Numbered from the stretch's first letter, positions 31,201 through 34,200 are shown. The stretch is DNA of 51,383 nt from Octopus bimaculoides (GCF_001194135.2 NC_068995.1:52186279-52237661); one strand, 5' to 3'. Notes: generated from the letters alone by a model not told the origin. Numbers and translations: made by a program.

Positions 31201-34200
31201 TTCACAGACATTCAGTATTGTACAGCTATACTATTACAATAATTAATCACTAAAAATGCAGCTATATGATCAATATATCCCATGTATAAAGCCCAGTACA
31301 TACACCACAGTTTAAGCAGCATCAACTGCTTTGTCATGCAAGTAGAATCTGTGAACGTCTTGTATAATGTTAGACAGAGCATAACGATGCAACTAAGAAC
31401 CACCACTACATTTCAAAATCAAAGGAGCACCACTACAAATAACTACAAAATTAGTGCATATGACTAGCAACCCAAAACAGCAAGCCAAGCATTGCAGCGA
31501 GCCATGTAGTAGTGCCATGTAAGGGCAGTGGAATTGAAAACAAAACAGAAAACATTAAAAAATGATTATTAAAAGAATAATTTATTATATTTGTTTTTTT
31601 TTTTAAATATAAAAATTAAGTTGGGAGAGTCAAAATAAGAGGCATTAAATTATTCCAAGCATTCACTTACTTAATACTAGCAAATTACAGCAGAACTAAT
31701 TAAGACGAAAGAGAGTTGCTAGAATATGCAGTCAAAGAGTTTTACACAGAAGGAAGAAAAAAATAGATAAGATAGGATAAATAAATACAATGGATGAGCA
31801 CTTAATTATCTGTTAATAGAGAGATAGCTGGTGCATGTGTGGATTCTAGTCAAACTAGAAATGGGGGTACTTTTTTTTTTAATTAAAAAATAAGAAAAAG
31901 CATAGGCAAGTATTAGAAATAGGGAAATAACTTCTTTTTTTTTTTTTTTCATTATTTTTTTCAAAAAGAAAAAAAATAAGGGGCAGAAAATAAAACCACA
32001 GAAAGCTTCTTTAAAAAAAAATGTTCCCAGTAGTAAAGAATCCCAGAGTTTCCCTTAGCAAGAATTCAAGAATAGTCAATAAGTGAAAGAGGAGGAGGAG
32101 GAGGTGGAGGAGGAGAGAATCATTGAAAAGAACCAATTCTGTATTCAATGACTGAAATGAAATTATCTTTCATTCTATAACAAATTTATACATATATANN
32201 NNNNNNNNNNNNNNNNNNNNNNNNNNNNNNNNNNNNNNNNNNNNNNNNNNNNNNNNNNNNNNNNNNNNNNNNNNNNNNNNNNNNNNNNNNNNNNNNNNNN
32301 NNNNNNNNNNNNNNNNNNNNNNNNNNNNNNNNNNNNNNNNNNNNNNNNNNNNNNNNNNNNNNNNNNNNNNNNNNNNNNNNNNNNNNNNNNNNNNNNNNNN
32401 NNNNNNNNNNNNNNNNNNNNNNNNNNNNNNNNNNNNNNNNNNNNNNNNNNNNNNNNNNNNNNNNNNNNNNNNNNNNNNNNNNNNNNNNNNNNNNNNNNNN
32501 NNNNNNNNNNNNNNNNNNNNNNNNNNNNNNNNNNNNNNNNNNNNNNNNNNNNNNNNNNNNNNNNNNNNNNNNNNNNNNNNNNNNNNNNNNNNNNNNNNNN
32601 NNNNNNNNNNNNNNNNNNNNNNNNNNNNNNNNNNNNNNNTATATATATATATATATATGTGTGTGTGTATGCATGTATGTATGTATATGTATGAATGTAT
32701 AAGTAAATAATTAGTGAAACTGGCTATAGTATAACAGAACTGTAACAGAGCAGTAAAATACAATAGCATTAAATAGTATGTATAAGAACACAGACAGCTC
32801 CCACAGTTTGTGGGAGGTGTTGAGGTAAAGGGAATGTTAACGGAAACTCTGGCTGATTATTCCACTGGATAGAGACTGAGTTACCTGAGTTGGCCTCTAG
32901 AGTGGTCGTAGACTGCAATTCAATCAGCGGCACGCCACAACCAACTGCCAAGAGAAGGAAGTAAGATGCAGCAATACTGCAGCTACAGAATGATAGCCTG
33001 AGTTGATAATAATACGAAGCTGTTTTGATAATTACGACAAGAAATTTAGCGCATGATGATGAGTGAAGAAAGTGATTAAAAAATTGTAAAACGTGAATAG
33101 AAACGATGTCTATAGTTATCCATTAAAGACATTTCTTTATTTCCATTTATTTATTTATTTTTTTTTCAGTGAAGCTGGCAAATAACTTACAATGATTCAG
33201 GTAATTCAATATAACTTTTTGCCCTTTTATTCAGTTCTATTTGACTGGAAATGTTACAAGCTGGAGAAAACAGCCAAGTCTACCTACGAATTACACACCT
33301 TGAAAAAGTGGGGGGGGAATAAAATAATGTAGTTCTGGATACACTATTTTTGAAAACAGGATGGAATGTTTCCAGTTGGAATGCCTTGTATCCATACATT
33401 TGCTCTATCTGAGCTGACCTGTGGTTAAACAACAATAGCACAATTCACAGATGATTGATGAAGACAATGAATCAGCTGCAAGTTTAATCCTGAAATATGA
33501 CTTGATATCGTTTCCAAATACACCAATTCATTTGTCGACCATCTCCCAAAGAAGATGGACTACTTAATAAGACTAGCATTAATATCATAAATAATGCAAA
33601 AATGGTTCTAGACATTATAATTTGCTTGTCAAGCACTAAGGTTGATGTAATCGACTTCTCCCAAGTCAAACCGTCCAGCCCATGCCAGCATGGAAAACAG
33701 ACGTTAAACAATGATGAAAACGATGTTATATTTGGTCATACAGATACAACACTCGCCTAATGGCTGACTATTCACTTACAACAAACAGCTATTGCAATGC
33801 ACTTCATCACACAAGCTAAACAGGAAAACATTAGTAAAAACATCTACACTAAACAAAATTCTCCACAAAAATACATGATTAATGATGTAAGCAACACTCA
33901 GAGCCCATCAGAATCCACATACAACATATACTAGTCACAAACCCAAAATTAACATCTGACGTGATGTATAAATCTAATGTTTAGAAATCCATATTCCTGT
34001 GGTAATGTTTGCACCATCCATACTGCTGGTCATGTCCACTATAAAACAGCAGCAACATAAGCCAACATAAGTTCATCCGGGGAATAAGATTGTGTGGGGG
34101 GTCAAAAATATTTCGATTTAGGAAATCAACTGCTCGACATAAACTGCATGGAGCTCATTTGAAATTGCACAAAAGACTTAATAAGGAAAAGATAAAAGTC

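Follow-up and report, generated by a model that had tools for sequence, protein, structure and literature searches.

A conserved 60-nt cassette exon in chromodomain 1 of octopus and cuttlefish CHD1, with a predicted intronic RNA duplex beside its donor

Introduction

CHD1 is a conserved nucleosome-spacing remodeller whose tandem chromodomains read histone H3 trimethylated at lysine 4 (H3K4me3) and gate the ATPase. Inserts in chromodomain 1 reportedly divert the H3 tail to the groove that lies between both chromodomains. In the human protein, chromodomain 1 contacts methylated H3K4 through W322 and W325 (PMC3082874). Here we analyse a stretch of 51,383 nucleotides (nt) from Octopus bimaculoides (GCF_001194135.2 NC_068995.1:52186279-52237661), referred to throughout as the window, which carries the CHD1 gene on its minus strand, and within that gene a 60-nt cassette exon that adds 20 amino acids (aa) to chromodomain 1.

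The closest counterparts of this exon are found in annotated CHD1 isoforms (XP_052829306.1/A0A0L8HGK3, A0A0L8HHY0, XP_036365755.1, CAI9733833.1, CAE1322925.1 and CAE1322927.1), which show the same exon at the same junction, without any difference. Human CHD1 (2B2W, 2B2T and 4NW2, and the CHD1-nucleosome entry 9EAR) shares with octopus both the fold and a phase-1 intron at RKG/A (here and below, a slash marks a splice junction). Unlike the cephalopod protein, it has nothing between ...GRKG and ATGATTT, where the cephalopod isoform inserts 20 residues that are modelled as a low-confidence loop. In-frame inserts at the same phase-1 intron (..KKG/ATG..) are also present in several vertebrate CHD2/CHD1 models, including two phyllostomid bats that carry GLLKRNPFA (P0147, P0169) and a set of reptiles and a bird (P0153, P0185, P0143, P0156). 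However, these inserts are unrelated to the cassette in sequence and length and are restricted to lineages or species. This intron position is ancient and may have been used repeatedly for small alternative exons, or some of the inserts may be annotation noise.

With respect to splicing control, long-range RNA bridges are known from the IAS2-ISAR intronic stem downstream of FGFR2 exon IIIb, from SMN2 intron 7 and from the docking-selector pairs of Dscam. By analogy, the CHD1 locus would resemble these systems in having two intronic segments that complement each other across hundreds of nucleotides, 3' of an alternative exon and conserved over a long time. It differs from them in that the CHD1 duplex is a prediction, without compensatory covariation or a recognised protein-binding motif.

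Results

The 60-nt exon is real, alternative and already annotated, and hence not a discovery. Isoform X3 of O. bimaculoides CHD1 (XP_052829306.1, identical to UniProt A0A0L8HGK3; 1948 aa) matches the window with 100% identity and maps to it as 38 coding exons, all with GT-AG introns, the cassette being coding exon 7; therefore, the window holds the entire O. bimaculoides CHD1 gene. The tblastn matches to a human CHD1 sequence, used only as a guide query, tile the minus strand from about 38.8 kilobases (kb) to 5.1 kb. The cassette and its surroundings comprise the following features.

32885..32944, minus strand: the 60-nt cassette, an alternative exon to which XP_052829306.1 maps exactly, as coding exon number 7 of isoform X3; it shares 53/60 nt with cuttlefish and 60/60 with O. 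vulgaris
32945..32982, minus strand: conserved upstream intron flank with a putative branch site, polypyrimidine tract and AG acceptor (ctgcagtattgctgcatcttacttccttctcttggcag), part of a 175-nt octopus-cuttlefish block
32812..32884, minus strand: conserved downstream intron flank in the same octopus-cuttlefish comparison, with the donor GTAACT at its start and duplex arm 1 (see below) inside
38624..38766, minus strand: upstream constitutive exon, ending with strand 1 of chromodomain 1, donor GAG/GTAAGT (from sequence and protein mapping)
28121..28346, minus strand: downstream constitutive exon, coding for the remainder of chromodomain 1 with the Trp cage and ending ILEW (from sequence, tblastn and protein mapping)

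Products of both inclusion and skipping are present, as gene models, in O. bimaculoides and in the cuttlefish, and within each with/without pair the 20 residues are the sole difference. The models are distributed among species as follows.

O. bimaculoides: with, P0212 (1948 aa); without, P0215 = A0A0L8HHY0 (1928 aa)
O. vulgaris: with, P0092 = CAI9733833.1; without, none seen among cluster members
O. sinensis: with, P0213 = XP_036365755.1; without, none seen among cluster members
Acanthosepion pharaonis (cuttlefish): with, P0216 = CAE1322925.1 (1758 aa); without, P0093 = CAE1322927.1 (1738 aa)

The paired isoform models presumably stem from transcript evidence. The inserted peptide is identical in all three Octopus models, and the cuttlefish matches it at 17 of the 20 residues. 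The annotated models carry no functional note, and the exon goes unmentioned in the literature searched on CHD1 in cephalopods, in octopus or in connection with alternative exons.

Read on the minus strand, the exon has its first base at 32944 and its last at 32885. Its lead-in, cttacttccttctcttggcag, is followed by the acceptor cut and TTGGTTGTGG, and at its 3' end CCAACTCAG is followed by gtaact, so that the exon is bounded by an AG acceptor and the donor CAG/GTAACT; the reading across the whole exon is ctgcagtattgctgcatcttacttccttctcttggcag/TTGGTTGTGGCGTGCCGCTGATTGAATTGCAGTCTACGACCACTCTAGAGGCCAACTCAG/gtaactcag. The upstream exon ends at 38624 (...CGC AAG GGA G/gtaagt) and the downstream exon starts at 28346 (acag/CT GTC GGC), leaving flanking introns of 5679 and 4538 nt in O. 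bimaculoides. Both junctions are in phase 1, the length of the exon is divisible by three and its frame contains no stop codon. The first-pass annotation, made from the sequence alone, had proposed this acceptor, the spacing of exactly 60 nt to the CAG/GTAACT donor, the match in phase and the gain of 20 aa. All of these are recovered here, and our inclusion reading equals its peptide exactly. Its reading as a cassette exon likewise agrees with the inclusion and skipping models annotated in octopus and cuttlefish, but the exon is not "hidden" as had been claimed, being present in RefSeq XP_052829306.1 and UniProt A0A0L8HGK3.

The strength of the splice sites was assessed with position weight matrices trained on the remaining 35 introns of the CHD1 gene, with the cassette sites left out. 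For the cassette, the donor score is 9.31 and the acceptor score 8.56, where the gene medians are 9.36 and 9.68, respectively. Across 41.5 kb of intronic sequence on the sense strand, cassette-level scores are reached by 22 acceptors and two donors, but none of these form a pair spaced 30-250 nt apart; the antisense strand holds one decoy pair of such strength and spacing. The pairing of acceptor and donor exceeds chance.

Comparison with the orthologous loci of cuttlefish (L001) and O. vulgaris (L002) places the cassette in the same intron in each case, 60 nt long and with the AG and GT retained, so that the splice sites and the length are conserved in cuttlefish. The intron that harbours the cassette is 10-19 kb long across the species compared, and between octopus and cuttlefish it is otherwise unalignable: a whole-intron BLAST of O. 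bimaculoides (10.3 kb) against cuttlefish (13.7 kb) returned only two matches. The first spans 175 nt at 85% identity (expect value, E=5e-51) and covers window positions 32982..32812, that is, 38 nt upstream, the exon itself and 73 nt downstream; the second spans 52 nt at 87% identity (E=7e-11) and covers 32073..32024. The same two blocks were recovered between O. vulgaris and cuttlefish, together with a third match of 36 nt that was not seen with O. bimaculoides. Between the two octopuses, the whole first block is identical (171/171 nt).

Within the exon, octopus and cuttlefish share 53/60 nt and 17/20 aa. The seven codons that differ comprise four synonymous and three nonsynonymous changes, and the first 14 residues are invariant whereas the last six are variable. 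At third codon positions, identity between octopus and cuttlefish is 17/20 (85%) in the cassette compared to 40% and 53% in the flanking exons, and between O. bimaculoides and O. vulgaris nucleotide identity is 60/60 in the cassette compared to 92% and 95% in the flanking exons. Judged by these sequence comparisons, the cassette is under stronger nucleotide constraint than the neighbouring exons. A hairpin is predicted within the exon at 32900..32942 (minus strand), where GGUUGUGG pairs with CUACGACC, in octopus as well as in cuttlefish (L001 22774-22833), and such an exon-internal hairpin might account for part of the synonymous-site constraint.

Outside the cephalopods, an insert at this junction is absent from all of about 80 CHD1 isoforms in ten clusters of bivalves, gastropods and Lingula, and the same holds for the remaining representatives from the search with a long query, except for the few vertebrate CHD2/CHD1 models with unrelated short inserts. 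The full-length cephalopod relatives were retrieved with a query of 1324 aa. The protein search appears to favour matches near the length of the query: a 145-aa junction query returned only short open reading frame fragments of 79-250 aa, including intron read-throughs, and no cephalopod transcripts. A 430-aa query gave no cephalopod transcript fragments among its best 120 matches. A HMMER search with the 70-aa read-through translation against 1.84 billion representatives yielded only proteins of repetitive sequence and one tandem-repeat match due to chance (P0424), with no further cephalopod orthologues.

The conserved block occurs once in the 51-kb window and once in each of the orthologous loci of 89 and 53 kb, so that within these three loci it is not an interspersed repeat.

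The 52-nt block is reverse-complementary to intronic sequence immediately 3' of the cassette donor. The two complementary segments are listed below.

32834..32869, minus strand: duplex arm 1 (TCCAGTGGAATAATCAGCCAGAGTTTCCGTTAACAT), intron positions +16 to +51, predicted with RNAduplex and conserved in octopus and cuttlefish
32026..32061, minus strand: duplex arm 2 (TTGCTAAGGGAAACTCTGGGATTCTTTACTACTGGG), inside the conserved block 32073..32024 and reverse-complementary to arm 1

The arms are predicted to pair over 29-30 base pairs (bp) with small bulges, and this pairing is kept in octopus and cuttlefish. The predicted energies and the distances from donor to arm 2 are as follows.

O. bimaculoides: duplex -35.0 kcal/mol; donor to arm 2 about 0.8 kb
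O. vulgaris: duplex -34.8 kcal/mol; donor to arm 2 about 0.9 kb
Cuttlefish: duplex -37.9 kcal/mol; donor to arm 2 about 0.4 kb

Shuffled partners gave -18 to -22 +/- 4 kcal/mol in RNAduplex. When the sequence from the cassette to arm 2 was folded as a whole (587 nt in cuttlefish and 1113 nt in O. vulgaris), the pairing was kept in both the minimum free energy and the centroid structures. Furthermore, both arms fall within the only two blocks that are shared by both octopus-cuttlefish intron comparisons. Support for the putative duplex comes from the complementarity and the conservation of both arms. A known protein-binding motif, such as GCAUG, was not recognised beside either arm. Neither the strong nucleotide constraint on the exon nor the conserved complementary intronic pair beside its donor is on record in the literature searched.

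In O. vulgaris, the loop that separates the arms contains an almost perfect palindrome exceeding 100 bp (L002, about 34040-34330); its site corresponds to the run of N at 32199..32639, where the sequence is masked in the window. This palindrome may be a hairpin-forming transposon insertion.

At the protein level, the region matches the human CHD1 tandem chromodomains in the PDB with E=1e-62 to 5e-67 and about 50% identity, and the IKWKGW Trp-cage motif is retained in octopus. An AlphaFold2 model of the form with the 20 additional residues, built on a 34-sequence alignment in which three rows carry the insert, has a mean predicted local distance difference test score (pLDDT) of 79 and a predicted template modelling score (pTM) of 0.73. 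In this model, residues 25-36 of the fragment form strand 1, the cassette (39-58) is coil with pLDDT <50, and the rest of both chromodomains scores 85-96. The low pLDDT of the cassette may come from there being only three insert-bearing rows in the alignment. Superposition with Foldseek on 2B2W, 2B2T and 4NW2 gives template modelling (TM) scores of 0.93-0.96 at a root-mean-square deviation of 1.2-1.7 A, which places the insert between strand 1 and the CHD1-specific insert and suggests that the tandem chromodomain fold would tolerate it. The first-pass annotation had put the cassette at the start of the CHD1-specific insert, and it does fall there, after strand 1 of chromodomain 1, in the model and in the alignment.

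A short segment within the invariant core of the cassette, VPLIEL, resembles the HP1 chromoshadow-binding motif PxVxL, with Ile where Val is usual; the motif requires the central Val, so that the resemblance is at most a tentative lead.

Discussion

The explanation that we favour, and hold with high confidence, is that the exon is a genuine conserved cassette of CHD1 in octopus and cuttlefish, and that RNA-level elements, among them the predicted duplex of about 30 bp, most likely determine whether it is included. Inclusion adds 20 residues, 14 invariant followed by a variable six, directly after strand 1, where the CHD1-specific insert begins, with frame and fold kept. The choice between inclusion and skipping would be set by the exon, its immediate intron flanks and the duplex, all of which are more conserved than the surrounding coding sequence. 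Intron positions +16 to +51 would pair with the partner 0.4-0.9 kb further downstream, and the duplex would either put the intron between the arms into a loop or hide or expose a regulatory site close to the 5' splice site. The duplex probably forms in vivo and controls inclusion. The extra loop could alter the contacts of the chromodomains with the histone tail or with DNA, or their gating of the ATPase; the first-pass annotation had likewise suggested that splicing may tune methyl-lysine reading or autoinhibition. A more far-reaching proposal is that coleoids possess a regulated 20-aa switch in chromodomain 1 that arose in this lineage, stayed near-unchanged in nucleotide sequence and is set by an RNA bridge, possibly ADAR-sensitive, the loop altering tail reading, DNA contact or ATPase gating; we put this forward tentatively and consider it doubtful as a whole.

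Several points weigh against the favoured explanation. Transcript support is deduced from the existence of paired isoform models, and conservation was shown for octopus and cuttlefish only. With respect to the duplex, one of 300 shuffles approached the energy of the O. bimaculoides pairing, and among 30 pairs RNAalifold found no compensatory double change, two one-sided changes that preserve pairing and three pairs that are broken or gapped, in an alignment of three sequences of which two are near-identical. As to the protein, the cassette has pLDDT <50, so that the model says nothing on its conformation or contacts.

The alternatives differ mainly in whether they concern the duplex or the exon. 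We see a small chance that the duplex serves mainly as a substrate of ADAR, that is, for adenosine-to-inosine (A-to-I) editing, or is some other structured intronic RNA, and that splice choice has nothing to do with its nearness to the cassette. Coleoid cephalopods have very extensive RNA editing and ADAR requires double-stranded RNA, which the imperfect duplex would supply, its roughly 29-30 bp being conserved in both cephalopod lineages. However, both arms are intronic, so that editing there would not recode the protein; moreover, arm 1 is contiguous with the block that contains the exon and donor, and the two shared conserved blocks are the very partners of the pairing. A structured RNA of another kind finds no Rfam family at a meaningful score, the search of 31800..33200 having returned only three repeat- or microsatellite-like microRNA matches far below the gathering scores. 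That the exon itself is a chance pseudo-exon, or an annotation artefact passed between gene models, has in our view a negligible probability. Long introns often hold decoy splice-site pairs, and the O. vulgaris names were apparently transferred from other annotations, but the gene's sense introns contain no decoy pair of equal strength, and octopus and cuttlefish, whose introns cannot otherwise be aligned here, have in common the exon with its length and its two splice sites, as well as some 110 nt of flanking sequence. In addition, the exon or its skipping is carried by independent annotations, namely UniProt A0A0L8HGK3 and A0A0L8HHY0, RefSeq Gnomon models in two species and the cuttlefish genome project.

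The remaining alternative, also raised in the first-pass annotation, is that the donor is skipped and the exon acts as an alternative last exon or through intron retention, ending at TAA 32771..32769 and giving a truncated protein that lacks the ATPase. The frame does stay open to this stop codon, for 38 further codons in O. bimaculoides, as had been stated. The predicted length of 549 aa is obtained only if the optional 159-nt exon at 43744..43586 is counted (438 + 53 + 58), whereas the X3 exon set gives 496 aa. Short isoforms without the ATPase do exist in the family, namely Patella vulgata X5 (P0347, 534 aa), which ends ..HAWTK after chromodomain 2, and vertebrate CHD2 models of about 500 aa (P0267, P0277), but those end past both chromodomains. 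The length of the read-through tail differs among species: 38 aa in O. bimaculoides; 90 aa in O. vulgaris, which has lost the stop through a 4-nt indel; and 15 aa in cuttlefish, whose frame is shifted by +3 and -4 indels. The conserved downstream nucleotides are thus read in different frames, and their conservation does not extend to the protein. The nearest AATAAA or ATTAAA downstream is at +1002 in O. bimaculoides and +1119 in O. vulgaris, that is, no octopus poly(A) signal is found within about 1 kb, with ATTAAA at +173 and +260 in cuttlefish. No truncated octopus protein is among the best 120 matches of the 430-aa query, where an identical match of 145 aa should have ranked. We therefore regard this alternative as very unlikely, and the idea of a truncated isoform can be dropped, leaving an exon that is real but already annotated. 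The family does have truncated products, none of those seen ending at the cassette intron.

If the favoured explanation is correct, the cassette of 20 residues in chromodomain 1 would be a natural handle on how the reader and gating module of CHD1 is tuned. It has been retained since the divergence of octopus and cuttlefish, with nucleotide constraint above that of the adjacent exons, and the paired intronic elements would offer a compact example of possible splicing control by RNA structure in a group with heavy regulation at the RNA level. A regulated switch of this kind, if true, would amount to lineage-specific tuning of a universal remodeller.

Two further observations concern small differences among CHD1 isoforms. 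In the oyster Magallana gigas, isoforms P0104 and P0357 read GRVTATGSK and GRVTGSK, respectively, at the same exon junction as the cephalopod cassette, two residues apart, which points to alternative 3' splice sites at a spacing of 6 nt. In the O. bimaculoides gene, a second optional cassette of 159 nt lies at 43586..43744 (minus strand), with AG and GT flanks; it is skipped in the four octopus models (P0212, P0092, P0213 and P0215), but both cuttlefish models contain its orthologous counterpart.

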